Below are positions 22,736 to 57,844 of a stretch of DNA of 64,000 nucleotides, piece after piece (position 1 is the stretch's first letter; every line of letters begins with the position of its first letter). The translations under genes and the position numbers were made by a program. The notes beneath the pieces are model-generated. The model had not been told where the DNA came from. It worked only from the letters and a program-made list of their open reading frames with translations, and did no database searches. The stretch spans positions 418,157 to 482,156 of the IMG/VR virus record IMGVR_UViG_3300028558_000016; one strand, given 5' to 3'.

Positions 22736-22736
22736 G

Positions 22737-38203: not shown

Positions 38204-39001
38204 TTATACATCTGAATCATCAGATTGTTCCTCTTGGTCATTTTCGAGGATCCTTCTTATCTTGTCTCGTACCCTTGCCGCTTCCTCATAGTCTTCATTC
38301 TCAATCAGATTCTGAAGCTCTTTCTTTAGCTTTTCTATGTCATCTCTGTCTTTGAGTTTAAATGCTTCTATCTTTTCCACGCCAAGCGATTCAAGAACCT
38401 CATCAAGGACTTTCTTCCTTGCTTCAGGATCTCCGTAATAGCTCATCTCAAAAAGAATGGAATGGATCACCTCGAATAGCGTGAAGGCCTTCGTGCAGGA
38501 GAGAACAATCGACTCTTTTTCTGCGGAGTTTACCTTTCGTACTATGTAATTTTCGTTCAACCTAACTTCCATTTTCCTGTATGATGATACCGGAGAGAAT
38601 TCGACGCTAAACAGTTCTCTGTCCTTACCAACACCTCTCATTCTTGCGACGCTGTACAATGTCATGTCGTCATCCGTAACCGGATCTATCTCATGCGCAA
38701 TCTCCATCCAGGAGAGCGTTTGATCTTGTGGGGATTCTATGTTCATTTCGTTCCAGAACTTGATGAAGCTTTGCCCTGCAAGAGACGAATCGAAAATATA
38801 ATCGGTCGTCTCGGGATTCAACGCAAGTAAAAACATGATGTCTTCCACTAAGACTCCCTCGTCAACCGTCACCGGAAAGGTGAGGTATGACACTATTCCG
38901 AGGCTTGTGCCAAGTACATCCAATGATTGTCTCGTCTCGTTTCCCTCTTCATCAATCTCAACGAATTCGAAAAAGACTCCTTCCTTTGAAATTCTTATCA
39001 T
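38204..39001 (-). CDS. Hypothetical protein with C-terminal UVR motif
   Basis: LKKELQNLIENEDYEEAARVRDKIRR. Confidence 0.7.
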   Translation of the reverse strand: MIRISKEGVFFEFVEIDEEGNETRQSLDVLGTSLGIVSYLTFPVTVDEGVLVEDIMFLLALNPETTDYIFDSSLAGQSFIKFWNEMNIESPQDQTLSWMEIAHEIDPVTDDDMTLYSVARMRGVGKDRELFSVEFSPVSSYRKMEVRLNENYIVRKVNSAEKESIVLSCTKAFTLFEVIHSILFEMSYYGDPEARKKVLDEVLESLGVEKIEAFKLKDRDDIEKLKKELQNLIENEDYEEAARVRDKIRRILENDQEEQSDDSDV

Positions 39002-39081
39002 GAGGTTCGTATTATTTGAGGCGGTAACAGAATATCTGTGGCCGTCAAATTATATATTTTCTGGAAAATTTAGGCAAAATC

Positions 39082-39615
39082 CTACTTGTCCATCAAGGAC
39101 AGATTGTGCAACTCTATCTTAGCGATGAGCTTTTTAGAATAACCTGGATCTGTTGCATATCCAGCTTTAAGCAATCCCTCGGCCCAACCCTTATAGTCGC
39201 ATGGGTCCAGTTTGAAAAGGAAAGCGTATCGTTTTGCGCCTGCAAGGAAAACTGAATGGTCTCTGTAAGAATCGAGAACCGTCGGATATTTTCTAAAGCA
39301 TTCGTCTTTTAAATCGTCAGTGTATTTGTAGGTTTCTCCCCACCAATCTCCCTTGCATTTTATTCCAAAGTGGTTGTTGGCCTTTGTGGCAAGGTCGCTC
39401 TTTCCAGCAGCACTTTCTAACAATGCCTGAGCGAGAGTTATGCTTGCCGGAATTTTGAAGATCTTCATCTCAAGTATGGCAGCATCTCTGTATTTAGAAA
39501 TGTATTCGCTCTCGGTTTTAAATTCTATCTCAGCCGAAACGGCAGGTGAAAATTCTCTATAAATGAAGAAAATAACTATGAAAGAGAAGAATAATCCTAT
39601 TAATAAATTTTTCAT
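39082..39615 (-). CDS. Glucosaminidase (GH73/FlgJ-type muramidase), N-terminally anchored
   Basis: IPASITLAQALLES..SDLATKANNHFGIKC..GYATDPGY. Confidence 0.9.
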   Translation of the reverse strand: MKNLLIGLFFSFIVIFFIYREFSPAVSAEIEFKTESEYISKYRDAAILEMKIFKIPASITLAQALLESAAGKSDLATKANNHFGIKCKGDWWGETYKYTDDLKDECFRKYPTVLDSYRDHSVFLAGAKRYAFLFKLDPCDYKGWAEGLLKAGYATDPGYSKKLIAKIELHNLSLMDK

Positions 39616-39887
39616 TTTTTCTTGTAGAAATCAAATAAATCCTGCCACATGTGCTGGTTGGTTCCAGTCTTAATGTCTTCCAAATAGGCATCAAACATTC
39701 CTCTGTCCTGTCTGTATAAGTAATCACCGGCTAAACTCTTTCTTGCTCCTGTCGCTCTGCTGCTTGCGGTCTTGTTGTCTTTTCCATAAACCTCGTTCAT
39801 GAGTTTTCTCAATAAAGGAGCCGTGATAATCTTTTTAAAATTCTCAAGTTCTTGGTCAAATCCCTCGAATATTTTTAGGTATTTCAT
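39612..39887 (-). CDS. Motif-bearing small protein
   Basis: Starts MKYLKIFEGF. Confidence 0.7.
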   Translation of the reverse strand: MKYLKIFEGFDQELENFKKIITAPLLRKLMNEVYGKDNKTASSRATGARKSLAGDYLYRQDRGMFDAYLEDIKTGTNQHMWQDLFDFYKKK

Positions 39888-40237
39888 TTGATGTTATTCT
39901 TCTTGAGAACCGCTCTGTACATCTTGGCGATGTCATTGAGCTGAGGAATTCCGTCAAATTCCATTCTCGCCTGAGTCACTCGGTCTTTCTTAAGTTTATC
40001 CTTTCCAGAACCATCATATTCAGTGTATTCTATGAAAAGATTCTTGTTCTTGTAAACTACCGGCTTATATTTCATTGGAGCTTCCCATGTGCTCGATTTG
40101 TCGATTACTTCCAAAGGATCTCCATCAATATCAATCGCTTTAGCAATCAAAGCATTTACCTCTGCAACCTTCTTTTGAATTGCTGCGTCTGACATCCCCT
40201 CATTTAGGAAGTTCTCATATAGTTTTATGTGTTTCAT
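39884..40237 (-). CDS. Motif-bearing small protein
   Basis: Starts MKHIKLYENFLNE. Confidence 0.75.
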   Translation of the reverse strand: MKHIKLYENFLNEGMSDAAIQKKVAEVNALIAKAIDIDGDPLEVIDKSSTWEAPMKYKPVVYKNKNLFIEYTEYDGSGKDKLKKDRVTQARMEFDGIPQLNDIAKMYRAVLKKNNIK

Positions 40238-40842
40238 GTAATGGAAGCTTCTACGGTAGCTTTAATTATTTTTGGCATTTCGTCTTCAAAATTCTTTGCG
40301 AGATTAACGGTATCTATATTAGACAATTCGGCAATGACATCATGCGTTGACAAGAAAGAATCCAATAATTCATCAGAAAGCTTTCCAGCAACAATGCAAA
40401 TCATTACTGTTAGAGCAACGTTACCGAATGTTTTCTTTTGTTCTCCGTTCAACGAATCTATGAAATTCTTCAAAAGAGGAATCTTATTAGAAATTCTTAA
40501 AATCAATTTGAAAATTCCTGCCGTGTATATGTCTCCTTTGTGCTTCAACCATTCAGCCATTTTAAATGTGACTCTGCCAACCTTCTCGCTTGATTCCATT
40601 CCAATATATGTCAATGCAGCACTCGCGAGATGTGCTACTTTTCCAAGACTCAATGCTGCACCTATTGCTAATGTGGCCAAAACGGCTTCATTATTTCCGT
40701 CAAGCTTTGCTACAAGCACTCCGTCTTTTTTAATCTCTTTCTCGGTATCGGAAGCGATCTTATCGTCATCAACGATTTTTAATATCTCGTCGAAGATGTT
40801 TACGTCGATCTCAAATTCCTCAAACAGTTTTATGTGTCGCAT
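40234..40842 (-). CDS. Motif-bearing protein with hydrophobic helices
   Basis: Starts MRHIKLFEEF. Confidence 0.7.
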   Translation of the reverse strand: MRHIKLFEEFEIDVNIFDEILKIVDDDKIASDTEKEIKKDGVLVAKLDGNNEAVLATLAIGAALSLGKVAHLASAALTYIGMESSEKVGRVTFKMAEWLKHKGDIYTAGIFKLILRISNKIPLLKNFIDSLNGEQKKTFGNVALTVMICIVAGKLSDELLDSFLSTHDVIAELSNIDTVNLAKNFEDEMPKIIKATVEASIT

Positions 40843-41099
40843 TACTTTTCTTCTTTATCTGTTTCTTCCCATTCTCTTATGGTGCCTTCAGCATCCCATA
40901 GAGCACAACACATTCTCTCAGAAACCTTCTGGTCAACCTGAGGATGCTTGCACATCTTTTCTTTTAGATCTATGAATTTACAATTAGCACAGTTTGTGCC
41001 TTCAACATTTTCTGGAAGCGTGACAAGATCTGCCGCTTTTGCTCTATCGAGACGGCTTGGTTTGTCCTCTTCATTCTCGTAAATCTTTAAGTGTTTCAT
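40842..41099 (-). CDS. Motif-bearing HiPIP-like Cys protein
   Basis: Starts MKHLKIYENE; CANC-x8-C-x13-CCALW. Confidence 0.6.
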   Translation of the reverse strand: MKHLKIYENEEDKPSRLDRAKAADLVTLPENVEGTNCANCKFIDLKEKMCKHPQVDQKVSERMCCALWDAEGTIREWEETDKEEK

Positions 41100-41101
41100 T
41101 G

Positions 41102-41431
41102 TTATCCGAGTAATTTTTCAAGCTTTTTAACGAGCGTTTCTACGGTAGTTGAATATCCGTATAAACCATTAATGTCTGTTCCAAGACTTACTCCTCTGTT
41201 TGACATTGTAATTTTGAAATTGGTTCCAAGATAGGAACATTCAAAATAATCATTGGTAAAAAAGTCTATGTCATCATTTTTAATGACAGTCTTCTTTATT
41301 CTTATTCCAGCGGCCTTCAATTGAGTAGCAACAGCGCTCATGTATTCTTTCTTTGCTTCGCTGTAGATTCCACGTTTGACGTCCATAAGATTTCCAGCAG
41401 ATGCAGCCTCAAATAATTGTAAGTGTTTCAT
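41102..41431 (-). CDS. Motif-bearing small protein
   Basis: Starts MKHLQLFE. Confidence 0.7.
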   Translation of the reverse strand: MKHLQLFEAASAGNLMDVKRGIYSEAKKEYMSAVATQLKAAGIRIKKTVIKNDDIDFFTNDYFECSYLGTNFKITMSNRGVSLGTDINGLYGYSTTVETLVKKLEKLLG

Positions 41432-41432
41432 A

Positions 41433-41741
41433 TTATGCTTTAGCTCTTTTTATGTGCAAGTAAACAAACTCATCCACGTCTTCCAAGCTTCCCTTTACTT
41501 TCTTTGGAAATTTGTCAGTCACCAACTTATAAATACGTCTTGCTTCTGTCTTATCTTTATCACCTGGAGTTTCATCTCCTGTGTTACCATTTTCTCTTGT
41601 AGTCAATAGGATCTCATCATCGTCTTCCTCTTCAATGTCAAACCAACTATGTTCTTTCTTTACGAAATCACATATTTCTTTCCATTCAGTCGAGGTTGTT
41701 TCTTCGTTCAAGAATCCCTCAAATAGTTTAATGTGTTTCAT
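41433..41741 (-). CDS. Motif-bearing small acidic protein
   Basis: Starts MKHIKLFEGFLNE. Confidence 0.75.
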   Translation of the reverse strand: MKHIKLFEGFLNEETTSTEWKEICDFVKKEHSWFDIEEEDDDEILLTTRENGNTGDETPGDKDKTEARRIYKLVTDKFPKKVKGSLEDVDEFVYLHIKRAKA

Positions 41742-41743
41742 AT

Positions 41744-42139
41744 TTAAGATTTTTTAGTTTGGTCGCTGATGTCTCCAGGTTCTACGTCTGCTGGAATTTC
41801 TTCCACGATGTCAACCATAGTTCTGTTATACAAAGCTGCTTCCTTTTCTGAAAAAGAATCAGATAAAGCTTTGATGAAAGCCTTTGGAGTTTTTGGATTT
41901 AAGTTGATGCTTCTCTTATGTGAGTGTCCAATCTCAAGAGTGTAACCGAAATATCCGATCATGTCCTCAACTGTTCCCTTCACATATTTAATTCTTGTTC
42001 TTCCTTGACCCTTGTCGTAGGTTACTTTAACGATGAAAGCTTTTCCAGGTTTTGCTGGCTTTGCAGCTGATTCAGGATTAGGTGCATCAGTGAATTTATT
42101 CTCGTTGATAAATCCTTCAAACAATTTAATGTGTTTCAT
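41744..42139 (-). CDS. Motif-bearing small protein
   Basis: Starts MKHIKLFEGFINE. Confidence 0.75.
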   Translation of the reverse strand: MKHIKLFEGFINENKFTDAPNPESAAKPAKPGKAFIVKVTYDKGQGRTRIKYVKGTVEDMIGYFGYTLEIGHSHKRSINLNPKTPKAFIKALSDSFSEKEAALYNRTMVDIVEEIPADVEPGDISDQTKKS

Positions 42140-43124
42140 TCTTCTTGATTATTATTTCTCTGTTACCAGGTATAACGTTGTATTCTTTTCCTAAAACATC
42201 CTGTATCATTTTGATCTTGCTCGTCATGTCACCGGTTTGTTTAACCGTAAATCTTCCAGTAGCATCGAAGGTCTTGCTGTATGTTATAGGTTTCCATGTG
42301 CTGTCTGTTCCGAAATTATGTCCAAAGCTATCTCCAAGTTTTGCTCTTAATAATTTTAATACCTCTTTATATGGATGTGTTTCTGCCGTTTTTACTATTT
42401 TTACTGGAACTTTTAATCTCGATTTTATCTTCAGCATGTTAGTGTTCTCGCTCTCGTCTGGAGTGCTTAATGCTTCCAAATAAATTTTTTCTGTAAATTT
42501 CTTAGCATCTTCTATTTGGTCCTTTTCAAATCTTTTATTCATAACCATGTTTGGACCGCTGGTAGTTTGAAATGAAATCTTCCATTGGTCAAGACCGTCT
42601 CCTCCAAGATTTGAAGCTAAAAAACCAGAATTGTATAATGATGCAACAGTCTCTCCGTGAATGGTCAAATGCCAAGCTCTTAATTCATTGTCATGGCCTA
42701 TTGAAGATTTTCCATATTCTTTGGCATTCTGCTTCCAAGAAAATTTAACGGATTCTTCAGCTTCATCCAATTCCTCGTTGGATTTTCTGTCTCCCATTAT
42801 GGTGTAATAAGTTCCTTCACCGTTCATGCCTTCGCCAATAATGTCAAGCTTGTAATCGCTTTTTTGTAATGCTTCTATGGCATCCCATGCGTGACCTTCT
42901 GAATCGAAGTAGTCATCGGTTCCATCAAATCCTTCATAATCGTCATCAACGGTCAACTCGTGGATGTAAAGAGTCTCACCTGCTTTCAACCTCTCTTTTA
43001 CTTCTTTAACCTCTTCCTTATCGAAATATTCTTCATAATCAGAAAAACTCTGTGAAGTTAATTTTTCAAAATCTGGGCCGAGATCATTAGGATCGAAATT
43101 TTCAAATAGCTTAATGTGTTTCAT
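42126..43124 (-). CDS. Motif-bearing multidomain protein
   Basis: Starts MKHIKLFENF at the second Met; about 332 aa. Confidence 0.75.
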   Translation of the reverse strand: MKHIKLFENFDPNDLGPDFEKLTSQSFSDYEEYFDKEEVKEVKERLKAGETLYIHELTVDDDYEGFDGTDDYFDSEGHAWDAIEALQKSDYKLDIIGEGMNGEGTYYTIMGDRKSNEELDEAEESVKFSWKQNAKEYGKSSIGHDNELRAWHLTIHGETVASLYNSGFLASNLGGDGLDQWKISFQTTSGPNMVMNKRFEKDQIEDAKKFTEKIYLEALSTPDESENTNMLKIKSRLKVPVKIVKTAETHPYKEVLKLLRAKLGDSFGHNFGTDSTWKPITYSKTFDATGRFTVKQTGDMTSKIKMIQDVLGKEYNVIPGNREIIIKKNETH

Positions 43125-43126
43125 TA

Positions 43127-43387
43127 TTATGCTTTGCTTGCTTTTACCCATTCATCCCAAAAGTCTTCACCGTCCATTAAATAATAACCTATGAAGTCGG
43201 CTATCTTTTCTGGAAAATCTTCGATGCCTTTTATTTTTTTAGGATCAATTCCAAATCTTTTAGCGTTATCAAACACGAATTTACCCAAAGGCTCTTTCAT
43301 GTGTCCTCTGTTTCCAAGCTCTTTTGTAACTTTTTCTACAGTGTTTAATTCTGTATGGAAGTTCTCGAATAATTTAATGTGCTTCAT
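43127..43387 (-). CDS. Motif-bearing small protein
   Basis: Starts MKHIKLFENFHTE. Confidence 0.75.
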   Translation of the reverse strand: MKHIKLFENFHTELNTVEKVTKELGNRGHMKEPLGKFVFDNAKRFGIDPKKIKGIEDFPEKIADFIGYYLMDGEDFWDEWVKASKA

Positions 43388-43397
43388 AATTATAAAT

Positions 43398-43694
43398 TTA
43401 TTTTACCCAATCCTTAGATCTTCCGGCGTTGTCATCTCCTAAATTATTCTTGTATTGCTCGTGTTCTTTCTTGTCTTCAGGTTTAAGCAAAGGTTCAACC
43501 TCTTTATAAGTTGCATCCTGACAATCGTCAAGACTCTTTCCAATCTTATACTTGATCATGTAATTGGTTTCTCCAGCCATGTCACCAAACGGTTCTTCCC
43601 AAAAGAACACTTTCTTTCCGTTAGTTAAGTCGTAATAGTCTGGACCCATGTTTGAATCCTGATCGAAATCCTCAAATAATTTAATGTGATTCAT
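43398..43694 (-). CDS. Motif-bearing small protein
   Basis: Starts MNHIKLFEDF. Confidence 0.75.
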   Translation of the reverse strand: MNHIKLFEDFDQDSNMGPDYYDLTNGKKVFFWEEPFGDMAGETNYMIKYKIGKSLDDCQDATYKEVEPLLKPEDKKEHEQYKNNLGDDNAGRSKDWVK

Positions 43695-44104
43695 TATTTA
43701 AAACTTTTAGTTAAAAAATTCCATGCAGCGTTTGCTTCAGACTCTTTCTTAATATCTACTGATGCTATAGTTCCAGCCATTGGATCGTCGTATAGAATAG
43801 AAAATTTTCCTTCTTCATTAAAGAAGAATAGTTGTCTTTCTGACTTATCTTCGTTCTCAAGGAAATATCCATCAATAGAATTACCCTGTTTAATTTCCAT
43901 ATCAGATGCTTCAGAGACAGTCCATTTTCCTTTTTTTGATTTTACATCATTAGAAAAATCTTCTAAAAATTTCTTGAAGCTCTCATACTCTTCATCATAA
44001 GTAAGAACGTCCAATGCGAACTTTCCAACTTTTTCTATAGCGTTAGCAACGTCAACGAGGATCCCCTCGTTTGTAAATTGCTCAAATAGTTTAATGTGCT
44101 TCAT
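43694..44104 (-). CDS. Motif-bearing small protein
   Basis: Starts MKHIKLFEQFTNE. Confidence 0.75.
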   Translation of the reverse strand: MKHIKLFEQFTNEGILVDVANAIEKVGKFALDVLTYDEEYESFKKFLEDFSNDVKSKKGKWTVSEASDMEIKQGNSIDGYFLENEDKSERQLFFFNEEGKFSILYDDPMAGTIASVDIKKESEANAAWNFLTKSFK

Positions 44105-44286
44105 TATTTCTTATTAAGGATTTCTTCTATTTTTGTCCTCTGTTCAACAGACAAAGCAATTGGTTTGCCCATGTGAATGAACGAATAAACGGTTTCGCCT
44201 GAATTTTTACCTTCAGCTCTTTCTATTCTTATTTGTTCTGGGTTAAGATAGTTTGTATCTTTTTCGAAAATTTTAATGTGTTTCAT
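44104..44286 (-). CDS. Motif-bearing small protein
   Basis: Starts MKHIKIFE. Confidence 0.7.
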   Translation of the reverse strand: MKHIKIFEKDTNYLNPEQIRIERAEGKNSGETVYSFIHMGKPIALSVEQRTKIEEILNKK

Positions 44287-44287
44287 G

Positions 44288-44773
44288 TTACTTGTTCTTT
44301 AAATATGTATCAAGCAATTTCTTGCCGCTTTTCGTCCACTTCTGTTTGTATAGGTCTATGTCCTTCCAACGTTTCAGAGCTTCCTTAAATAATTCCATAC
44401 CAGTTCCCTTTGATTGTTCTTTTGGATCGACCATGACATTTATGTTTCCCTTGTCCTCGTATGGTGGAAAATCGAACGGGTAATGATTTAAAACACCTAT
44501 GAGCTTTCCTGATTTATTTCTATATAAAAGACAGTCAACCCATTTGTCTCCAACCTCACCTTTGAAATAACTTATTCCAGGTTCTCCTTTTTTATCATAT
44601 TGTCCAATCTGGTGATCCCAGAATTCCTTGAAGTTTTCAATGTCTGGAATCTCAATGACCTTCTTCTTTGAATTCGCTTTTTCCACGTTTGCTCTAACGT
44701 GAGCCAAATCATGAGACTTTGCGTATTGGTCGTCCTTGTTTTCAAATAACTTAAAAGACGTTAGGTGTTTCAT
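44288..44773 (-). CDS. Motif-bearing GNAT-family acetyltransferase
   Basis: Starts MKHLTSFKLFEN; acetyl-CoA motif A VMVDPKEQSKGTGMELF. Confidence 0.7.
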   Translation of the reverse strand: MKHLTSFKLFENKDDQYAKSHDLAHVRANVEKANSKKKVIEIPDIENFKEFWDHQIGQYDKKGEPGISYFKGEVGDKWVDCLLYRNKSGKLIGVLNHYPFDFPPYEDKGNINVMVDPKEQSKGTGMELFKEALKRWKDIDLYKQKWTKSGKKLLDTYLKNK

Positions 44774-44997
44774 AAAGATGCAATACTTTTTTTAAATGAA
44801 TCAACATCAGATTGAGACTCAGATATAAAATACTTTACGCCTGAATGTGAAGCTAATAAAAACATTTTGTGTTCTTTTGCCAGCTTGGTGATTTTCTTGT
44901 TAGTTTCTGAATCTTTCGACCATATCTTAACACCTAAAAAATCCTTTAAAAATTCAATATTTGAGTTTTCACCCTCAAAAAGCTTTATGTGTTTCAT
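44770..44997 (-). CDS. Motif-bearing small protein
   Basis: Starts MKHIKLFEGE at 44997, just after an AATATATA box. Confidence 0.7.
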   Translation of the reverse strand: MKHIKLFEGENSNIEFLKDFLGVKIWSKDSETNKKITKLAKEHKMFLLASHSGVKYFISESQSDVDSFKKSIASL

Positions 44998-45076
44998 TAT
45001 CGTATATATTTGGTTATAAAACAAAAACAGCAGGTTTCCCTGCTGTTCCGTTAATTTTATTGAAGTAAACCGAATA

Positions 45077-45646
45077 TTAGACGAAAGTGTCCTCCCAGTA
45101 GTCAGCTGCAAATGTCAGCGACAGAATCCAAACGTCAGTAGATTGGTAATCTAATTCCATTGGATTGATAGGAGTGATAGGCCACATTACCGGTAGTCTC
45201 ACTTTTCTGTGAATGTCTCCAGCTTTGTTGAATATTGTTATTAAACCTGAACCAACGTAATCCTTCTTTAATCCCATACCACCGGTATTTGGATTGTAGA
45301 TAAGGTCGCTCCATTGTCTCAAAGTCTTGAAGGTGTACATGCTGTTTGCATCGTTTAAGTTAACCTCGAAATCGATTGCTACATCGATCGTGGTTGTCTC
45401 TGGACGAGCACCTGCATACCTTCTCTTAGCGAACTTGTAGTATTGTTCCACAGTTCCAGGGTTCTTGTCTATCTCTAAACCAGATACCTTCTTAACGTGT
45501 TCCAACAATAGGTTCTGCCCGTTGTTTCCTGTTCCAGCATCAATTCCAGAGGGTGGAATCAATGTGACTTCGAACTGATTCAAAAATACAGGTTCGAAAT
45601 TTTTCATCGAAGCCTTACTATTCTTATAATGCGATAAACCTGCCAT
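45077..45646 (-). CDS. gp19: Tail tube protein (T4 gp19-like)
   Basis: EPVFLNQFEV..QYYKFAKRRYAG..LRQWSDLIYNPNTG..KKDYVG..WPITPINPMELDY..TFAADYW. Confidence 0.85.
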   Translation of the reverse strand: MAGLSHYKNSKASMKNFEPVFLNQFEVTLIPPSGIDAGTGNNGQNLLLEHVKKVSGLEIDKNPGTVEQYYKFAKRRYAGARPETTTIDVAIDFEVNLNDANSMYTFKTLRQWSDLIYNPNTGGMGLKKDYVGSGLITIFNKAGDIHRKVRLPVMWPITPINPMELDYQSTDVWILSLTFAADYWEDTFV

Positions 45647-45682
45647 TATTATAAAGTGTTATTTTTCTCTTTTATTATATAT

Positions 45683-45815
45683 CTAAACAGTTTCGAATTT
45701 CCACTTAAACCCATGAGCTGTCTTTCTTTTTGTTCCAGCACAACATTCACGTATGTTTCTGTGATTATAACCTGTTTCTCTATATATCTCGTATCTTGTA
45801 TATGACAGACTTCAT
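45683..45815 (-). pseudogene. Collapsed GIY-YIG/NUMOD1 homing endonuclease remnant
   Basis: MKSVIYKIRDI* followed in another frame by RETGYNHRNIRECCAGTKRKTAHGFKWKFETV*. Confidence 0.7.
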
Positions 45816-46067
45816 TTACTTTATATTCCCGTCTTTATCCCAAGTTTTTTCTCCAGCCAAATTATTATCAGGTTTTATTGTCTTTAGAATGTCTTGGTAT
45901 TTGATCTTGTATTGTTTAGCTATTTCTTTCGCTGCCTTTATAGTTCTTGTATTGGAACCTAAAACCTTTTTGTATAATTCCTTTTTCAAGGAATAAAAAT
46001 CTCTAAGGACTTCATCCATAACAACCTCTTCGTTCAGAAAATTTTCGTATAATTTAATATGTTTCAT
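45816..46067 (-). CDS. Motif-bearing small protein
   Basis: Starts MKHIKLYENFLNE. Confidence 0.75.
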   Translation of the reverse strand: MKHIKLYENFLNEEVVMDEVLRDFYSLKKELYKKVLGSNTRTIKAAKEIAKQYKIKYQDILKTIKPDNNLAGEKTWDKDGNIK

Positions 46068-46405
46068 TATTCTGTTCTTAAAGGCCAATTCTTCTTTATT
46101 CCTTCTATGTTAGCATTAAGCCATTCCTTTGCAGCCTCTAACGTCTCAGACTCATGTTTCAATGTAATCCACTTCCACTTGCAATTAGGATTGTCATCCG
46201 TTATGGTTGTCCCGTTCTTCATGACCATGAACCTAATCTTAAATGGCTTCTCTGGGTTAATACTTCCAACTTCAAAACCTTTAAGCTTAATATGATGACT
46301 TGAACTATAGAATGATCTGTAACGTCCGGTAGGTTTTTCAGTTTTGAACGTGAACTTTTCAACTGCTTCATTCAAGAAGTTTTCATATAGTTTTACGTGT
46401 TTCAT
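46067..46405 (-). CDS. Motif-bearing small protein
   Basis: Starts MKHVKLYENFLNE. Confidence 0.75.
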   Translation of the reverse strand: MKHVKLYENFLNEAVEKFTFKTEKPTGRYRSFYSSSHHIKLKGFEVGSINPEKPFKIRFMVMKNGTTITDDNPNCKWKWITLKHESETLEAAKEWLNANIEGIKKNWPLRTE

Positions 46406-46695
46406 TATTTAAAGTCTTTCAGCCAGCCTTTTTGCTCTGCATATTTTGCATGTTCTGTGTCAAGCTGTGTTGTATCTCCTTCAACATCGTTCACCATCAA
46501 TTGAAGCGCATCATCTATGGTTGCAGGAGTTATTTCTCCTCTTAACATTCCGAAGAAGAAATATTCTGTTCCAGCTTGCATGTCATCTAAAACTTTCTTT
46601 TGTTCTGGAGTTGCAACTGACATAACCTTCTTTGCCTTTTCTGTATTATCGGTTTTCTCGTTTAAGAAACCTTCAAACAATTTAATGTGCTTCAT
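46405..46695 (-). CDS. Motif-bearing small protein
   Basis: Starts MKHIKLFEGFLNE. Confidence 0.75.
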   Translation of the reverse strand: MKHIKLFEGFLNEKTDNTEKAKKVMSVATPEQKKVLDDMQAGTEYFFFGMLRGEITPATIDDALQLMVNDVEGDTTQLDTEHAKYAEQKGWLKDFK

Positions 46696-46702
46696 ATATT
46701 TA

Positions 46703-46999
46703 TTAATCTATTCTTAATGCACCTTGCATGTGGCCAAACAGGTAAACCCCGTAAGCTGATGTGAACTCAATCGTATAACCAACAAGATCTCCTCCTTTGG
46801 TGTTTCTAAATTGCTTGAATTCAGATACGTGTTTCTGGTCCTTCATTTTTGTAAGAATGTTCTCTACGTTGGAAACCTGATCCTGACCAAATGAAACATC
46901 CAGTGTTACTGGAACTTTTTCTTTTGGAAATCCATCTCTGAATTTTGTCGTATCATTTTCTGAAGCACCAAAATTTTCAAATAATTTTATGTTTTTCAT
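46703..46999 (-). CDS. Motif-bearing small protein
   Basis: Starts MKNIKLFENF. Confidence 0.75.
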   Translation of the reverse strand: MKNIKLFENFGASENDTTKFRDGFPKEKVPVTLDVSFGQDQVSNVENILTKMKDQKHVSEFKQFRNTKGGDLVGYTIEFTSAYGVYLFGHMQGALRID

Positions 47000-47280
47000 T
47001 ATTTAATTTTTTCTATTTGTGAAATAATATCCTTCTTCAAAGCGGCTTTTATTCCAGGAGACAAAGCATCTCCAGCTTCATCCAATGCAGCCTTTGCTTT
47101 CTTGGTGAATTCATCAAGAGCTTTAATAAGATCTTCCACGGCTTTCTTTGGTTTACCGTATTTGTAATCATCGTACGTCAACCAATGGCTCAATTCAGCT
47201 TCATTGATTCCGCTAATTTGTGCTAATCTTGCTTTTAATTCGCTGGTATCGAATTTTTCAAATTGTTTGATGTTCTTCAT
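46999..47280 (-). CDS. Motif-bearing small protein
   Basis: Starts MKNIKQFEKF. Confidence 0.75.
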   Translation of the reverse strand: MKNIKQFEKFDTSELKARLAQISGINEAELSHWLTYDDYKYGKPKKAVEDLIKALDEFTKKAKAALDEAGDALSPGIKAALKKDIISQIEKIK

Positions 47281-47573
47281 TACAATTTCTTTATTTCTTG
47301 TGCTAAGTCATCGAAGTTTGAATCTTCCAATGCGTATGAAGCAACATCTATAATCTTGTCGCCATCCCACTCACAAAACTTAGATACGATTATTCCAAGA
47401 ACCTGTTCGTCAGTTATCTTTCCAGACTTCTGTGCTTCAGGCGTGAATATCACACTCTTGCAATAAGCTATAATCGGAGTTAAATGTTCCTTGATATAAG
47501 CTTCTGTGTTCTCAGGAACCTTTGTGAAAGGAGCTGAAACCTCATTTAAGAATTCGTCGAATTTCTTTATCAT
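47280..47573 (-). CDS. Motif-bearing small protein
   Basis: Starts MIKKFDEFLNE. Confidence 0.75.
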   Translation of the reverse strand: MIKKFDEFLNEVSAPFTKVPENTEAYIKEHLTPIIAYCKSVIFTPEAQKSGKITDEQVLGIIVSKFCEWDGDKIIDVASYALEDSNFDDLAQEIKKL

Positions 47574-48097
47574 TATGCTGCTTGTTTAAATTTACCTGCT
47601 TTCATCTGTTCTTTCCATTCCTTCCATAAATCGAAATAAGATCTCTTGAAGTAATCCTTGCCATAATCCTTAAGGAGGTCAAGGTCCTTCAACATCTGCA
47701 ATTTCTCATTAGCAATCTTTGCCGTTGCAGCAAACATTACTCCTGAGCTTTGTCCTATCATCCATTCCCAATTTGCAATTCCTTTTGTGTAACCATACTT
47801 GTCAACACAAACGTAAGAAGCTTCATCTTGTAAATACAAATCAAAATACTTTGAACCTTCTGATGCCATCATGCCAACCGGTTTTGGAGCCGGAGCCATT
47901 CTTGGTCTTACCTCATCTACGTCTTTTATTTTGTCTGCATATCTTTTCTTTTCTGAATCATCTTCATTGACAGGTGCCTTTTCCGATTTTGCATCGAATA
48001 AATCTCCAAATGCATCATCATCCCAAGTTGTGTCAGGTTTAGTTTCTCCTGGATCTTGCTCGTTGAGGAAAGCCTCATATAGTTTTACGTGTTTCAT
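47573..48097 (-). CDS. Motif-bearing protein
   Basis: Starts MKHVKLYEAFLNE. Confidence 0.75.
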   Translation of the reverse strand: MKHVKLYEAFLNEQDPGETKPDTTWDDDAFGDLFDAKSEKAPVNEDDSEKKRYADKIKDVDEVRPRMAPAPKPVGMMASEGSKYFDLYLQDEASYVCVDKYGYTKGIANWEWMIGQSSGVMFAATAKIANEKLQMLKDLDLLKDYGKDYFKRSYFDLWKEWKEQMKAGKFKQAA

Positions 48098-48098
48098 A

Positions 48099-48434
48099 TT
48101 ATTCGTCTTTTTTCATTAATTGAGCTACCTGAGATCTTTCTACTTTCACTGTGTCTCCAATTTTCACATTGTGCACGACAGCAGGATCGTTATCAAGCTT
48201 TCCTTCAAAATGATCTGCGTCAACAACCTTCTCAATGTTAACCCACATCCATTCGACTTCCTCATCTTCTATGAAAGCAATCTTAACCCAATCTCCAATT
48301 TCTACAGGAGTCTTTGCGTTATCGTCTTGCCATTTTTTAAGTCTTGCATATCCTGCATCCTTATGAAGAATTCCAAGATTTTCAATTGGTTCTCTTTCTT
48401 CGTTAAATTCTCCGAATTGTTTAATGCGGTTCAT
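48099..48434 (-). CDS. Motif-bearing DUF2314 (YegJ-like) protein
   Basis: Starts MNRIKQFGEFNE; EWMWVNI..FEGKLDNDP..VKIGDTV. Confidence 0.7.
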   Translation of the reverse strand: MNRIKQFGEFNEEREPIENLGILHKDAGYARLKKWQDDNAKTPVEIGDWVKIAFIEDEEVEWMWVNIEKVVDADHFEGKLDNDPAVVHNVKIGDTVKVERSQVAQLMKKDE

Positions 48435-48435
48435 A

Positions 48436-48807
48436 TTATTTTCTTTGGTTTTTGAAATGATTATTAAACTTCATCTGTTGAATAAAATCTTGTCTCTTCA
48501 ATGATTTGAGAACCGCACCATACGCTTCCCACGCATCTCCAAGGTTAATGTGTTGTAAAGTGATATTATCTCCACCATTATCTTTGGTAACTCTGTATTG
48601 TGCACGTCCGTCACCCATAGGCATCTCCCAAATAAAACCAACGAGATTTTGTTCTGTTGCTTTATCAGAAGCTTCTTCCAATTCCTTTTCTACTTTGTTA
48701 TATTCAGCTTCATCTTTATCCCAACCTATGAGAGTTTCTTTAGGATACGATTCCTTTTCAAGCTTTGCTTCTCCCAAGAAGCTTTCAAATAATTTTAATC
48801 TTTTCAT
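48436..48807 (-). CDS. Motif-bearing small protein
   Basis: Starts MKRLKLFESFLGE. Confidence 0.75.
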   Translation of the reverse strand: MKRLKLFESFLGEAKLEKESYPKETLIGWDKDEAEYNKVEKELEEASDKATEQNLVGFIWEMPMGDGRAQYRVTKDNGGDNITLQHINLGDAWEAYGAVLKSLKRQDFIQQMKFNNHFKNQRK

Positions 48808-49415
48808 TTCTTAATTTCTTTTACTTTTGGAAGAGCTAATACTTTCTTTAAATCGTCTTCGGTGATATAGAATTTTCCTCTTGCTTCTATTCCTCCACCA
48901 AGTACAATATTCCCATCAGCATCGATCTTTGACCATGAATACATTGGAAAATGCATGTTCATTGCTTCAGTTTCTTCTTCAGTTAAATCTCTCTTTATAG
49001 GTTCTTTAGGAAGTGTTGGCTTGTCAAATTGCTTTACCAACTTCATTGCTTCAGTTGATTCGTTTACAAACGAAACCTCAGACTCATTTATTCTTACAGT
49101 CTTTTCAAAATCGTCAAAGCTTTTCATGTTGTATATATTTTGATTATTCTCGAACAATCCAGGATATAAATGAACCATGTCAGGCATTGGAAGGGGATCA
49201 ACCTCTTGCAATAAATTCAAGATGTCATCACCTATTTCCTTTGTAGGAAAACTAACTTCGTATGTGACATCCTTGCCACTTCTGCTTTCTTCCTTAACTG
49301 AAGCTCCAAGAACTTCAAGTCTCATTATGATATTGTCATCAAGATTATACATCGTGATTATTCCTGAATTAGCAACATTGTACTCGTTAAGGAAATCTTC
49401 AAATAGCTTTATCAT
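48804..49415 (-). CDS. Motif-bearing protein, apparent fusion of two cassettes
   Basis: Starts MIKLFEDFLNE; internal in-frame MKSFDDFE..INE at 49127 preceded by AATATATA. Confidence 0.7.
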   Translation of the reverse strand: MIKLFEDFLNEYNVANSGIITMYNLDDNIIMRLEVLGASVKEESRSGKDVTYEVSFPTKEIGDDILNLLQEVDPLPMPDMVHLYPGLFENNQNIYNMKSFDDFEKTVRINESEVSFVNESTEAMKLVKQFDKPTLPKEPIKRDLTEEETEAMNMHFPMYSWSKIDADGNIVLGGGIEARGKFYITEDDLKKVLALPKVKEIKK

Positions 49416-49460
49416 TTTTTAGGTTTGGTTTTAGGTTTTTTAGGAAAGCAACACATGTTA

Positions 49461-49763
49461 TTATTTGTTTATGTCTAATAGTTCTTTGATGATGTACTTC
49501 TTATTCTTCTCATACATTTTCTTTTCATCTTCGGTGAACGATGGAGCACACATTCTTTTGTACACATCTTCAATGACTTGTATCTTTGTCTTCTCTTCAA
49601 GAAACTTAAACAGCTTATTACCCTTCATTAACCCTGAAATATCATCGTTAATGTCTTTGATTAGTTTTTCTTTAGAATCTTCCACATCATTTTTTCCAAT
49701 CGCATATTTACTGTGCGTTGCATAATGAGCATCCAATCCCTCGAAAGTTTTTAGGTTTTTCAT
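49461..49763 (-). CDS. Motif-bearing small protein
   Basis: Starts MKNLKTFEG. Confidence 0.7.
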   Translation of the reverse strand: MKNLKTFEGLDAHYATHSKYAIGKNDVEDSKEKLIKDINDDISGLMKGNKLFKFLEEKTKIQVIEDVYKRMCAPSFTEDEKKMYEKNKKYIIKELLDINK

Positions 49764-50170
49764 TTGTTTTTCTTTTTTAGTTCATCTTTTATCTCGATCA
49801 CAAGTCTCTCTACGTTATTCAATTGCTTCTTTATTTGTCTTATCTCTTTCTCAGCCTTCATGTCAATATCCAAATCCTGCATGGATCTCTTTCTGTCTCG
49901 CTCCTCAACTCTTCTTTGGCTCATCATAATTATGGGAGCCTGTAATGCTGCCACTGTTGATAATATCAAATTCAGTAATATGAATGGATATGGATCAAAC
50001 GGCTTCCAAAGAAATTGAACAGAATTTATTATCATCCACAAGAACAAAAATCCAAGGAACGATAATATGAATGCCCAGCTTCCACCAAACTTCGATATTT
50101 TGTCAGAGACTCTATCTGCAAATGAAAGAATTTCTTCTTCGTTTCCTATTGTAGAATTTTGGTCTTTCAT
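49760..50170 (-). CDS. DUF1003-family membrane protein
   Basis: FGGSWAFI..FDPYPFILLNLILSTVAALQAPIIMMSQ. Confidence 0.9.
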   Translation of the reverse strand: MKDQNSTIGNEEEILSFADRVSDKISKFGGSWAFILSFLGFLFLWMIINSVQFLWKPFDPYPFILLNLILSTVAALQAPIIMMSQRRVEERDRKRSMQDLDIDMKAEKEIRQIKKQLNNVERLVIEIKDELKKKNK

Positions 50171-50385
50171 TAAATACCTTCTTTTATTGATTTAGCATCT
50201 TTTTTCGTGAGATATTGATTTATGTAAACAACCAATAAATCCGCCTTAGGATTAACACCATCAACTTCTTCTGCGTTTGATGTTAATTGTTCCAACAAAT
50301 TGTCTAATTCTTTTGTATGAAAATAAGCATCATCACCATGTGGACCTGCTTCATTTAATTCGTTAAATCCTTTTATGTTTTTCAT
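50170..50385 (-). CDS. Motif-bearing small protein
   Basis: Starts MKNIKGFNELNE. Confidence 0.7.
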   Translation of the reverse strand: MKNIKGFNELNEAGPHGDDAYFHTKELDNLLEQLTSNAEEVDGVNPKADLLVVYINQYLTKKDAKSIKEGI

Positions 50386-50386
50386 G

Positions 50387-50875
50387 TTAGTCAAGTCTTA
50401 TATCTATTATAGATGGAATTTGTTTGTGCAATGCACCTAAAGTTCCATTGTGTCCATACATCATACTGCTCGTGTTTCTGAACGGTTTAGGTAGATCTTC
50501 ATACGCATCTGACGGATTTAATTCATCATCCAATTTAATGAAAACAGTATTAACACCACCAGTTGATTCTCCGTCTTCGAATATATCGTATCCTTCAACA
50601 AAAATATCCAATTCTGGAATGTATCCTAAATAAGACTCTTGTCCATCAACTTCTCCTGAATCTCCTTTTAATTGGTTATCGGCAAATTCCATTAAAACTT
50701 TCATATAGATCTTATCAAAGAATTCATTTCCTCTGTATGTCAACTTATCATGGTAGTGATCGTTGATCACCTTTGTTGCTTCTGCGTGATTCATGCCTTT
50801 AGTTGCAGTAATCTCAAACTTTTCTTTTCCAACTTTTTCACCAAGGAACGACTCAAATAATTTAATATGTTTCAT
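50387..50875 (-). CDS. Motif-bearing protein
   Basis: Starts MKHIKLFESFLGE. Confidence 0.75.
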   Translation of the reverse strand: MKHIKLFESFLGEKVGKEKFEITATKGMNHAEATKVINDHYHDKLTYRGNEFFDKIYMKVLMEFADNQLKGDSGEVDGQESYLGYIPELDIFVEGYDIFEDGESTGGVNTVFIKLDDELNPSDAYEDLPKPFRNTSSMMYGHNGTLGALHKQIPSIIDIRLD

Positions 50876-50881
50876 AAGATA

Positions 50882-51193
50882 TTAGTTTTTTGGAATTCCA
50901 TAATCATTTTGAGCTGCCTCAATGTCAGATATAATAAGATCTTTTAATTGAGAAGCAATCTTCTGGTATTCTTCATGAAGCTTGATCATCTTATCAAACG
51001 CAGATCCATTATGTTTTCTTGCTTCGATGTATTCATCGAAGTCACCGCCAAATAATCCTTCTTCTTGTGCTATTTCAAATGCACCATAGAAATTATATTT
51101 CTCGCAAGCAGCATCAAAAAGTTTTAAACCTTCTAAGTTGATTTCGTTTTCGTCATTCTCATTGAGCTCATCAAATCTTTTTATATTCTTCAT
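50882..51193 (-). CDS. Motif-bearing small protein
   Basis: Starts MKNIKRFDELNE. Confidence 0.75.
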   Translation of the reverse strand: MKNIKRFDELNENDENEINLEGLKLFDAACEKYNFYGAFEIAQEEGLFGGDFDEYIEARKHNGSAFDKMIKLHEEYQKIASQLKDLIISDIEAAQNDYGIPKN

Positions 51194-51205
51194 GTTAGTT
51201 ATTGT

Positions 51206-51490
51206 TTATTTCAATTCAAATAATTTTACGAACTTTTTAAGTTCTCCTGAATCTCCTTCAGAATTTTTGCTTATTACAAGTACCATATTATCCGTAACGA
51301 ATTGTGCATCACAGTTTGCTTGTTCAGCAACGGATCTAATCCATTTTACTTTATTTGGAATGTTCTTATTGTTAGACAAGTAAAGAACTATAGCATTATC
51401 GTATCCTGAAATCTCTTCAGATGTTTGATAACTGTTTTGTGAACCTTCATTTAGTTCATTTAGTTCATTGAAGTTCTTAATGTTTTTCAT
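51206..51490 (-). CDS. Motif-bearing small protein
   Basis: Starts MKNIKNFNELNELNE. Confidence 0.75.
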   Translation of the reverse strand: MKNIKNFNELNELNEGSQNSYQTSEEISGYDNAIVLYLSNNKNIPNKVKWIRSVAEQANCDAQFVTDNMVLVISKNSEGDSGELKKFVKLFELK

Positions 51491-51740
51491 AGTTCTTCAT
51501 TTTATTTTCGTAATCATTGATTTGCTCCATTGACAACCATTCAGGCTTTTCTTTTAAAGCATTCCATATCTTTTTCATTTCAGCGATCTGTTTTTCAACA
51601 GACCCTTGATGTAAAACTCTTTCAGAACCTTTTCCATAATTCAAGAAATATTCACAATCTGATTGTAATCTATTAAGCATCATGTAATCAAATTCTGTAC
51701 CTTCGTTTAAAAATGCTTCGTATAATTTTATATTCTTCAT
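51477..51740 (-). CDS. Motif-bearing small protein
   Basis: Starts MKNIKLYEAFLNE. Confidence 0.75.
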   Translation of the reverse strand: MKNIKLYEAFLNEGTEFDYMMLNRLQSDCEYFLNYGKGSERVLHQGSVEKQIAEMKKIWNALKEKPEWLSMEQINDYENKMKNYEKH

Positions 51741-51761
51741 GGATGTCAATTTATTTCTATC

Positions 51762-51796
51762 AAAAAAGGCGAAGAGAATTCTCCCCTCGCCTTTTT
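51762..51796 (-). terminator. Terminator after the tail sheath gene
   Basis: ggcgagggg/ctcttcgcc stem with G-U pairs and a U tract on the - strand. Confidence 0.75.
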
Positions 51797-51818
51797 AGCT
51801 TTTTTGTTAGTTATGTGA

Positions 51819-56472: not shown

Positions 56473-57180
56473 ATGAAGAGAATTAAATTGTTTGAAGCAT
56501 TCATCAACGAAACTGATGATCTCGATAAGGATTTTTACACTCCAAAAGATATGGAAGAATTCAAGAAGTTTCTTGTCGATGAAATGGGCGTTAAAGCTGA
56601 TCTCATAGACAAATGCATCATGAAGACAACCAAGGGACATTCAAGAGAAATCGGTCTCATGGCAATGTGGTTAAATCACAAAGCAACAGCTGAAGGAAAA
56701 GAAATCATCGAGAAATACATTCAAGATAAAATAGTTCCTAACTTTCCTGAACTCGCTTATTTAAAAGGAGAATCAGTTAAAGAATCCAATACTCTGTTTT
56801 CTTTAAAAGAAAACAAAGCAGAAGTAAAAGTTCCAGAATCAATCGATGGTGTTGCAGTTCAACAAGTAGGATTTTATGATTTCAAAAAAGCTGTCATCAA
56901 GAAAGAAGGAATAGTTCTTCTTGGAACAGGTGGTGATATTGCTGAATGGGTCAATGGAGTAACAAAGGTTCTCAATGATGAAGGAATCGCAAAAGGAACT
57001 ACAAAAGATCTTTGGTCTGAAATTTATGTCATGAAAACAACAGGTGGAAGATCTGACACTGCATTGGTATTCGCCGAAGGAGATCACATCAATGTTGGAA
57101 AGATGGCAATGTGGAGATTGAAATTCGGTGATTGCTCATGGATCAGCGATTATTTAGATAATTACGCAAAACAACACTAA
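56473..57180 (+). CDS. Motif-bearing two-domain protein
   Basis: Starts MKRIKLFEAFINE; GATATATA box upstream. Confidence 0.75.
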   Translation: MKRIKLFEAFINETDDLDKDFYTPKDMEEFKKFLVDEMGVKADLIDKCIMKTTKGHSREIGLMAMWLNHKATAEGKEIIEKYIQDKIVPNFPELAYLKGESVKESNTLFSLKENKAEVKVPESIDGVAVQQVGFYDFKKAVIKKEGIVLLGTGGDIAEWVNGVTKVLNDEGIAKGTTKDLWSEIYVMKTTGGRSDTALVFAEGDHINVGKMAMWRLKFGDCSWISDYLDNYAKQH

Positions 57181-57202
57181 TTAAAAAACAACACTAATTA
57201 AT

Positions 57203-57478
57203 ATGAACCACATTAAATTGTTTGAAGACTTTCAAGGTAAACCAGATGCTTTACAAGCATTCCTTATAAAAATCAATGCTTTGCCTGAAAATGTAATCAG
57301 AGATATAATGGGAGATGCTGAATATATTGACACTCCTGGAAATTACGATGAAGAAAAGAAAGACTACGATGACGTTGAAGACTACATGCAACAAAACATG
57401 GGAACTGAATCGTATAAAAAATTGATTGATTGGTATCACGAAAACCCGGACAAGGTAGAGAAAATCATGTCCAAGTAA
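57203..57478 (+). CDS. Motif-bearing small protein
   Basis: Starts MNHIKLFEDF. Confidence 0.75.
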   Translation: MNHIKLFEDFQGKPDALQAFLIKINALPENVIRDIMGDAEYIDTPGNYDEEKKDYDDVEDYMQQNMGTESYKKLIDWYHENPDKVEKIMSK

Positions 57479-57507
57479 ATATATACATAAATTAACCCAA
57501 ACACAAG

Positions 57508-57810
57508 ATGAATATCTTCGACATCAAACAAAGAAAGACTATGTCTTTCGAAGAATGGATGAAAAACCGTAAGGTTGCTGAAAAAGGTAGCCAAACCGAA
57601 AAAGGTGCAGCTGAAATCACCAAAGATGGTGGAGCTTTAAATCCTGAAAAAGGAAAAGCAGGTTATGACAATGCAATGGATGCTGAAAAAGCAGACCTTG
57701 ACAAAGCAAAACACGCTGCAACAAAAGCTACTTACGACGGACCAGCTAAAGGTGAAGCAGGTTACGACAACGCAATGGATGATCCTAAGACGATCAACAT
57801 CAAGAAGTAA
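57508..57810 (+). CDS. Low-complexity protein with AGYDNAMD repeat
   Basis: KGKAGYDNAMD and KGEAGYDNAMD; N-terminus paralogous to the next gene. Confidence 0.7.
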   Translation: MNIFDIKQRKTMSFEEWMKNRKVAEKGSQTEKGAAEITKDGGALNPEKGKAGYDNAMDAEKADLDKAKHAATKATYDGPAKGEAGYDNAMDDPKTINIKK

Positions 57811-57844
57811 TTTCAAATTTTCTAAAAAGTAATTCCTAACTCAC

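Follow-up and report, generated by a model that had tools for sequence, protein, structure and literature searches.

Whether short blocks of similar DNA at the starts of successive phage genes act as DNA or through the peptide they encode is the question raised by a locus in the virus record IMGVR_UViG_3300028558_000016. The 64-kb stretch analyzed here (the window) is the last part, positions 418157–482156, of one contig of 482,156 bp (36.8% G+C) that comes from a rhizosphere metagenome; the virus record is rated complete. The original prediction regarded the blocks as microhomologies that let recombination swap, add or delete cargo cassettes. As set out below, the blocks encode a 13-residue N-terminal leader with the consensus M-K-H-I-K-L-F-E-x-F-[LIV]-N-E, which is conserved as a peptide and not as DNA and which precedes otherwise unrelated, mostly small proteins. 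We favor, at a little better than even probability, a leader that would act as a capsid-targeting, protease-removable propeptide on a hypervariable battery of packaged cargo proteins, a reading suggested by sequence comparison and by analogy with phage T4.

The repeated blocks encode a conserved N-terminal peptide

The three blocks singled out by the original prediction end exactly where it placed them, at positions 41741, 42139 and 46695. Each is the reverse complement of an ATG and the 12 codons that follow it, that is, the start of a minus-strand gene; the blocks are the first 30–39 nucleotides (nt) of genes and are coding, not non-coding DNA. Pairwise identity among the three is 82–87% over 39 nt (83–93% over 29 nt), and they encode the same 13 residues save for one Leu/Ile change, all remaining differences being synonymous. 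A degenerate 23-nt pattern of the gene start finds 23 sites in the window against 0.08 expected, a number reached in none of 100 shuffles, and 46 sites in the whole genome, where the reversed control pattern finds none. A repeat search of positions 39000–52000 returned the leader as the sole large direct-repeat family, with copies every 0.2–2 kb. The blocks had been described as near-identical, which is true of chosen pairs such as these three but not of the copies at large: over all 1770 pairs, identity across 39 nt averages 61%, the longest exact run has a median of 6 nt, 5% of pairs share at least 14 nt exactly and less than 1% share at least 20 nt. Nor are the blocks confined to 41701–46695, since the leader fills 39612–51740 and recurs on both strands in the window and in the genome. 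Its presence on plus-strand genes too (starting at 56473, 57203 and 58261) means that it tracks gene starts and not one DNA strand. Stop and start codons overlap or abut as first described, most junctions lying between −25 and +12 nt, with exceptions beside the sheath and tube genes.

Among 60 seed genes the leader is conserved, position by position, as M1, K2, H/N3, I/L/V4, K5, L6, F/Y7, E8, x9, F10, often L/I/V11, N12 and E13. The Lys, Ile, Leu, Phe and Glu codons vary while the residues hold, and replacements are conservative (I/L/V, F/Y, K/R). A check proposed along with the original prediction, namely whether synonymous positions are more conserved than expected, was run: the same codon is used at 0.54 observed against 0.49 expected from codon usage, and ordinary gene starts of the same genome give 0.51 against 0.45. 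Synonymous sites in the leader thus vary as they do in ordinary starts, and the identity resides at the peptide level. Neighboring leader copies resemble each other no more than do copies separated by 100 kb, with no sign of homogenization. Without extra synonymous conservation and without homogenization, the target of selection is the peptide and not the DNA block, and the likeness of DNA between gene starts is a by-product of the peptide.

Three kinds of variation in the leader were observed on the side. Codon skews occur at His3 (CAC in 29 of 36), Leu6 (CTA or TTA in 30 of 42, and in 130 of 147 in other phages) and Glu8 (GAG in 25 of 51); the last is specific to the 482-kb genome, and all are small beside the protein-level signal. 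Short forms with one or two residues fewer at the N-terminus, in which the heptad of leader positions 7–13 is kept, start the genes 47280–47573 and 48804–49415 (minus strand) and 61121–61474 (plus strand) and approach the length of the ten-residue T4 sequence. A sub-type, M-K-N-I-K-x-F-x-E-L-N-E, without the second aromatic residue, is found on the minus-strand genes 50170–50385, 50882–51193 and 51206–51490 and clusters at the sheath-proximal end of the first of the two gene arrays described below.

Carriers of the leader were counted with a position weight matrix built from the seed genes, at thresholds reached by fewer than one internal Met-started segment. This yields 69–83 of the 722 open reading frames (ORFs) of the genome, with fewer than one expected, about 40 of them in the window. 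Carriers have a median length of 113 residues and cluster at 140–160, 200–220 and 260–280 kb of the genome and, most densely, at 440–480 kb. Most have no Pfam or PHROG match; outside the window, recognizable carrier domains comprise an ATP-grasp enzyme, a Pol-beta-like nucleotidyltransferase and alpha/beta hydrolases (Pfam). After removal of the first 15 residues, all 75 clear carriers are singletons when compared with each other and with the rest of the proteome (BLASTP, 1e-5), and descent of the carriers from one another as paralogues was rejected on this ground. A word search of 5.8 billion proteins with the 96-residue carrier that starts at 46695 returned the query only, a result uninformative on longer or shorter kin.

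The carrier at 51477–51740 allows leader and body to be told apart. Its LPD11 domain is complete (Pfam 2.8e-31, profile positions 2–69 of 69) and spans residues 16–81, directly after leader residues 1–13; in an AlphaFold (AF2) model the domain has a per-residue confidence (pLDDT) above 90, and the leader is a detached helical extension with pLDDT of about 54. Of 28 LPD11 homologues, some two-thirds have the leader and then a linker whose length varies; eight begin with the domain itself, and in three another N-terminal domain comes first. Two of the leaderless homologues, one of each kind, reside in elements without leader-like genes; the one with another N-terminal domain has ArdA and YodL for neighbors and lies next to an integrase. 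The leader is a portable add-on before independent domains.

Leader genes in a huge-phage clade and its variable slots

The contig is myovirus-like, the window encoding a T4-type large terminase, a tail sheath and a tail tube (Pfam, PHROG). By its sheath, the nearest named phages are uncultured huge phages of 462–735 kb, Flavobacterium phage MaF61, Prevotella Lak phages and Tenacibaculum phages PTm1/PTm5, all at only 32–39% identity, and because of these neighbors the host likely belongs to the Bacteroidota. No near-identical DNA to the window region was found among GenBank phages. The strict pattern M-K-H-I-K-L-F-E-x-F is present in at least 117 IMG/VR stretches and continues, among the matches listed, with an aliphatic residue, N and E. 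All 50 source records examined are very large phages, as fragments or complete genomes (CheckV completeness). Bacterial and archaeal genomes (596 Gb) gave only five matches, three of them in Bacteroidota metagenome bins, and the cultured relatives PTm1 and MaF61 are without the leader. The leader marks a clade of huge phages. Complete relatives contain 6–18 matches to the 23-nt pattern against 46 in the 482-kb genome, which is therefore unusually rich in leader genes. The leader was not found described in literature searches that used the peptide as text or combined huge phages with an N-terminal motif or capsid targeting, which is weak evidence of novelty.

In the window, the leader genes are arranged around conserved structural genes as follows, relatives being referred to by L-numbers:

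54597–56411, minus strand: T4-type large terminase, the conserved left flank (Pfam Terminase_6N 1.4e-20 and PHROG terminase matches; 68–86% identical in L004 and L204).
51819–54527, minus strand: tail sheath, conserved backbone (phrog_34521 1.5e-118, Pfam Phage_sheath_1C; 73–90% identical in L202, L001, L204 and L004).
51760–51800, minus strand: terminator-like hairpin and T run directly after the sheath and before array 1 (read from the sequence; stem in the scan 51786–51771).
45816–51740, minus strand: cargo array 1, 17 abutting small genes from sheath to tube, 16 with the leader or its short form (ORFs, N-termini, position weight matrix; gaps −14 to +45 nt).
51477–51740, minus strand: first cargo gene, leader plus complete LPD11 (Pfam 2.8e-31).
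48099–48434, minus strand: cargo gene, leader plus DUF2314 (Pfam 5.1e-07, residues 49–107).
46657–46695, minus strand: leader block of the original prediction, start of a 96-residue ORFan (sequence).
45077–45646, minus strand: tail tube, conserved backbone between the arrays, without leader (phrog_32623 1e-29 and tail tube PHROGs; 75–95% identical in relatives).
45024–45049, minus strand: terminator-like hairpin (11 pairs) and T run directly after the tube and before array 2 (hairpin scan, sequence).
39612–44997, minus strand: cargo array 2, 16 abutting genes from tube to flank, all with the leader or a close variant (ORFs, N-termini, position weight matrix).
44288–44773, minus strand: cargo gene with a weak GNAT match (Pfam Acetyltransf_1, E 0.0013, below the curated cut-off).
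42101–42139, minus strand: leader block of the original prediction, start of a 131-residue gene (41744–42139) (sequence).
41102–41741, minus strand: two cargo genes absent between orthologous neighbors in L001 (DNA and protein comparison), with the third block of the original prediction at 41703–41741.
39082–39615, minus strand: conserved 177-residue gene with a hydrophobic N-terminus that closes array 2 (66–77% identical in L144 and L202; the L202 copy has a Pfam Glucosaminidase match).
38204–39001, minus strand: conserved 265-residue gene, right flank (68–75% identical in L001, L144 and L202).
56473–58656, plus strand: three opposite-strand leader genes, 56473–57180, 57203–57478 and 58261–58656 (N-termini, position weight matrix).
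21618–23745, both strands: small leader-gene cluster, 21618–21893 (plus), 21894–22511 (minus) and 23284–23745 (minus), with weaker ones between.

Both arrays are co-oriented with the terminase, sheath and tube genes and are split from sheath and tube by hairpin terminators, a scan of the locus placing hairpins only after these two genes. A scan for sigma-70 promoters gave no more matches than in shuffled sequence, the sigma-70 consensus being unsuited to a Bacteroidota host. A possible regulatory site for the tube gene is a 35-nt element upstream of it (45792–45826, minus strand), present in a single copy in the genome and 94–100% identical in L001 and L155, against only about 80% for the DNA on either side.

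Relatives were gathered via the tube protein and via the LPD11 cargo. They keep the backbone order of terminase, sheath, slot 1, tube, slot 2, 177-residue gene and 265-residue gene, and the slots between differ almost completely in the number and identity of their genes. Slots 1 and 2 hold 17 and 16 genes in the window, 13 and 7 in L202, the closest relative (tube 93% identical), and 3 and 0 in L002, which belongs to a complete genome of 374 kb. Homologues of nine of the 17 slot 1 genes and of two slot 2 genes are found in L202; slot 2 genes common with the window number four in L001 (one just 34% identical), one in L144 and two in L202, and L001, L144, L155 and L204 each share a different subset of the window cassettes. 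Order changes as well: seven common cassettes that run A, B, C, D, E, F, G in the window run A, C, B, D, E, F, G in L202, and L204 has D before A and F before E. A homologue of 41744–42139, downstream of the tube in the window and in L001, lies upstream of it in L146. The arrays are hypervariable, as the original prediction had proposed, with neither content nor order fixed across relatives, and the carriers occupy hyperplastic slots between conserved structural genes.

What moves the cassettes is told less clearly by these comparisons. Just one difference, the two genes missing from L001 (41102–41741), could be examined at its edges, both of which fall within about 15 nt or less of a leader ATG; the L001 leader at this place can be read as a chimera, on one informative site that is not significant. 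The coincidence of breakpoint and leader carries little weight because the genes abut, so that a whole gene gained or lost always has its edges at a leader, and because relatives are only 75–80% identical in DNA even where their tube proteins are 92–95% identical. Reads and contigs of four other rhizosphere runs over positions 41000–46999 stem from the same clone, at low depth and with no differences. Two "joints" and many loose ends in these run data involve leader copies, have sides of 20–22 nt flagged as unreliable and were set aside as cross-matches, not rearrangements. No RNA run was found to contain the 41000–46999 region. The presence of the same leader, with a variable linker, on at least five unrelated folds means that it was joined to new bodies many times, which by indirect argument favors recombination at the leader or immediately after it. 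Candidate routes are homologous exchange from leader to leader between related phages, illegitimate joining and repair after GIY-YIG cuts. Free-standing ORFs with a GIY-YIG-like N-terminus lie just upstream of the tube in several relatives (L155:1412–2068, L003:7576–8283, L004:9293–9982, L147:268–993 and L148:61–753) and not in the window; in L155 the insertion falls exactly between the 35-nt element and the region upstream of the tube. That the DNA blocks drive cassette shuffling is unproven, and such shuffling would be at most a side effect of the leader.

The leader, the scaffold repeats and the phage head

The case for a head-directed leader starts outside the window, at genome positions 68283–70385 on the minus strand (L173:7283–9385). 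There a 700-residue protein, adjoining the gp23-family major capsid protein (Gp23 2.4e-43), opens with a Peptidase_S77 domain of the T4 gp21 family (30.8 bits, Pfam cut-off 27) and has a tail of 13 tandem 14-residue repeats with the core Y-x-E-Y-[LI]-A-E, each containing an L/I-A-E site. This protein is probably a protease–scaffold fusion. Every one of the five IMG/VR records with a completeness of 90% or more encodes the S77 protease, and the scaffold repeats, in 3–13 copies, are found in 12 of 12 leader-bearing relatives. The 642-kb phage LR756502 has ten leader matches and 11 perfect scaffold repeats; the leaderless phages PTm1 and Lak-A1 have no heptads of the type described next and leaderless LR756500 has two degenerate ones. 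The covariation of leader and scaffold repeat is suggestive.

Leader positions 7–13 form the heptad [FY]xx[FY][LIV]xE. A heptad starting within the first 14 residues is found in 43 proteins against 5.9 expected, and in 26 of the 43 it starts at position 7. By their records, T4 IPII and IPIII have a ten-residue leader of which residues 4–10, just before the cleavage point, fit the heptad, and T4 gp23 has it at residues 59–65; the gp23 propeptide is reviewed as comprising 65 residues, with cleavage following Glu. According to the review literature, too, the first ten residues of IPIII suffice for packaging, and in the T4 targeting sequence targeting depends on residues 4 and 7, processing on residues 8 and 10. 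In the heptad these four correspond exactly to both aromatic residues, the aliphatic residue and the Glu. In an alternative, unshifted alignment, T4 IPI and the leader both have M1, K2, a hydrophobic residue at 4, K5 and F7. In the capsid protein of the clade, a conserved L-x-E ends the N-terminal extension (propeptide). The comparison with the T4 IPI locus made by the original prediction is apt, because the common block encodes a leader resembling the T4 capsid-targeting sequence.

These observations are compatible with the following scheme. By mimicking one scaffold repeat, the leader would attach cargo to the scaffold portion of the prohead core, and the S77 prohead protease would cut after Glu13, possibly also after Glu8 (within L-F-E). 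Mature cargo would stay in the head until delivered together with the DNA, and would be a rapidly changing arsenal for takeover and counter-defence. Array orientation and terminators would fit co-expression with terminase, sheath and tube at a lower level, and the likeness of DNA at gene starts may offer in-frame joints for occasional cassette exchange.

Several points weigh against a packaged, processed cargo. Packaging and cleavage are deduced for phages that are uncultured, and seventy-odd packaged species, including ATP-grasp and Pol-beta-like enzymes, far exceed the three of T4 (IPI–III). The heptad is short, and its match to T4 could be convergence or chance. Leader, scaffold repeat and protease co-occur within one clade, so that common ancestry confounds their association. 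The arrays are cut off from sheath and tube by hairpin terminators. Mature carriers have a median isoelectric point of 5.8, no different from other small proteins and unlike some of the T4 internal proteins, which are basic. To be listed here as well is a complex prediction of a leader protein with residues 20–500 of the protease–scaffold protein, which gave no verdict and is evidence neither way. A bolder form of the same idea, to which we would assign well under one chance in two and clearly less than to the propeptide itself, is that one 13-residue scaffold-mimic tag operates across the clade: about a tenth of the proteome (70–80 unrelated proteins, enzymes included) would be packaged and injected, and leader-to-leader exchange between co-infecting phages would renew the arsenal. 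With every cassette starting with the same in-frame tag, such exchange would act like a protein-level integron.

Competing explanations, related systems and implications

Among the explanations that dispense with the capsid, the one that fares best, though we hold it to be improbable, takes the leader for a sorting or docking tag to another destination, such as a vault/SPFH-like shell, a chaperone or unfoldase, or a membrane-associated assembly. A portable, N-terminal, amphipathic helix that is conserved at the peptide level on diverse cargo, enzymes included, would suit such a role, and the same window encodes a candidate shell in an 838-residue protein with major vault protein (MVP) shoulder and vault repeat matches (18601–21117). 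Nothing connects the leader with this vault-like protein, and the heptad common to the scaffold repeats and to two T4 protease sites points to the head; the leader, as read from its sequence, is without Sec, Tat or lipoprotein signal features. Taken by itself, the 838-residue protein (plus strand; Pfam MVP_shoulder 1.1e-27, Vault_3 repeat, Band_7/SPFH) is an unusual component for a phage. Elsewhere in the window are, on the plus strand, a 401-residue protein (144–1349) with a partial match to the catalytic domain of arginyl-tRNA synthetase (4e-08) and a 579-residue VWA/CobT-like protein (2360–4099).

Rather less credit is due to the original prediction itself, that DNA at the gene starts is the functional element and serves as microhomology for swapping, adding or deleting cassettes. 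It accounts for the strong differences in array content and order between relatives, for a two-gene difference in L001 that is bounded by leaders on both sides and may have left a chimeric leader, and for the repeated joining of the leader to new bodies that its occurrence on at least five unrelated domain families implies; T4-type phages, moreover, are reported to recombine on patches of less than 50 bp, with their shuffling driven by repeats between ORFans (PMC2839356). The sequence properties of the blocks speak against it: their synonymous sites are not extra-conserved, neighbors are no more alike than distant copies, and with a mean identity of 61%, a median exact run of 6 nt and less than 1% of pairs sharing 20 nt, most copies are a poor substrate for homologous exchange. 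Abutting genes force whole-gene differences to end at a leader under any mechanism, the four other runs represent the same clone and show joints only with unreliable sides of 20–22 nt, and GIY-YIG endonuclease genes in the same slots of relatives are an alternative source of turnover.

We regard it as quite unlikely that the conserved start is an expression element, a 5′ coding sequence or nascent peptide that aids initiation or reinitiation in coupled operons of a host that does not use Shine–Dalgarno sites. The genes are indeed translationally coupled via overlapping stops and starts, and the leader is rich in AT-rich codons and has the codon skews at His3 (CAC), Leu6 (YTA) and Glu8 (GAG). 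Against this, residues are held while codons vary, with conservative substitutions; about 90% of the genes of the same genome are equally packed and have no leader; and conservation reaches residue 13 and matches the heptad of protease sites. That the carriers form one paralogous family, their bodies diverged beyond recognition and the N-terminus alone kept, would explain why most bodies are small ORFans without detectable relatives and is very improbable given the unrelated known folds among them (LPD11, ATP-grasp, Pol-beta-like, alpha/beta hydrolase, DUF2314) and an LPD11 domain that exists leaderless elsewhere.

For the favored reading of the leader as a capsid-targeting propeptide, the functionally closest system is the T4 capsid-targeting sequence with the internal proteins IPI, IPII and IPIII. 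In both, a short N-terminal leader stands on otherwise unrelated, fast-evolving small proteins, starts with M-K, has hydrophobic or aromatic residues at positions 4 and 7 and ends in aromatic-aliphatic-x-Glu as T4 protease sites do; protease and capsid protein belong to the same families, and the loci are polymorphic between relatives. The leader of the 482-kb phage differs in having 13 residues and a consensus of its own, against 10–19 residues in T4, and about 70–80 carriers per genome, enzymes among them, compare with three in T4, roughly 25-fold more. The 482-kb phage further has its arrays inserted between the sheath, tube and terminase genes, a protease fused to the scaffold and a leader that resembles a scaffold repeat. 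Packaging is experimental in T4 and deduced from sequence in the 482-kb phage.

Closest to the DNA-level idea are the PeSL cassettes of T4-like phages, which likewise have a short repeat before many ORFans in hypervariable regions, with whole-ORF indels and replacements between relatives (PMC2839356, PMC4122927). PeSLs are intergenic, about 100 bp long and composed of a promoter and a stem-loop terminator, and their mini-circles have been shown experimentally (PMC2839356, PMC4122927). The leader repeat, in contrast, is coding, leaves no intergenic space (gaps −25 to +12 nt) and lacks a promoter–terminator structure. The giant phages phiKZ, 201phi2-1 and SPN3US also have an S77-family protease that cuts after Glu and many head proteins, including paralogues with identical short N-termini (PMC5694885). 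Their ejection proteins have propeptides mostly of more than 100 residues, in families of paralogues (PMC5694885), whereas the 482-kb phage has one short leader on unrelated singletons.

Two further systems bear a more distant likeness. In encapsulins, a short terminal cargo-loading peptide directs diverse cargo into an HK97-fold shell; this peptide is usually at the C-terminus, attaches directly to the shell protein and stays on the cargo, and the leader has no sequence similarity to such peptides. With the polyvalent proteins the 482-kb phage has an LPD domain in common, one cargo being a standalone LPD11 domain, but its domains are encoded by separate small genes, each with the leader, and not by one giant fusion. 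A leaderless LPD11 homologue is found in a mobile element with ArdA and YodL as neighbors, a setting that fits action soon after the DNA enters the cell.

The shared leader sorts about 10% of the ORFans of a huge phage into one functional class and predicts a destination and a processing event for them, and it is a simple marker both for the phage clade and for the right choice of start codon. If the leader is indeed a loading tag, the protein species injected by these phages would far exceed those of any studied phage, and the tag would be usable for packaging foreign proteins, as the T4 sequence has been. The arrays would then constitute a catalogue of candidate takeover and counter-defence factors against Bacteroidota.

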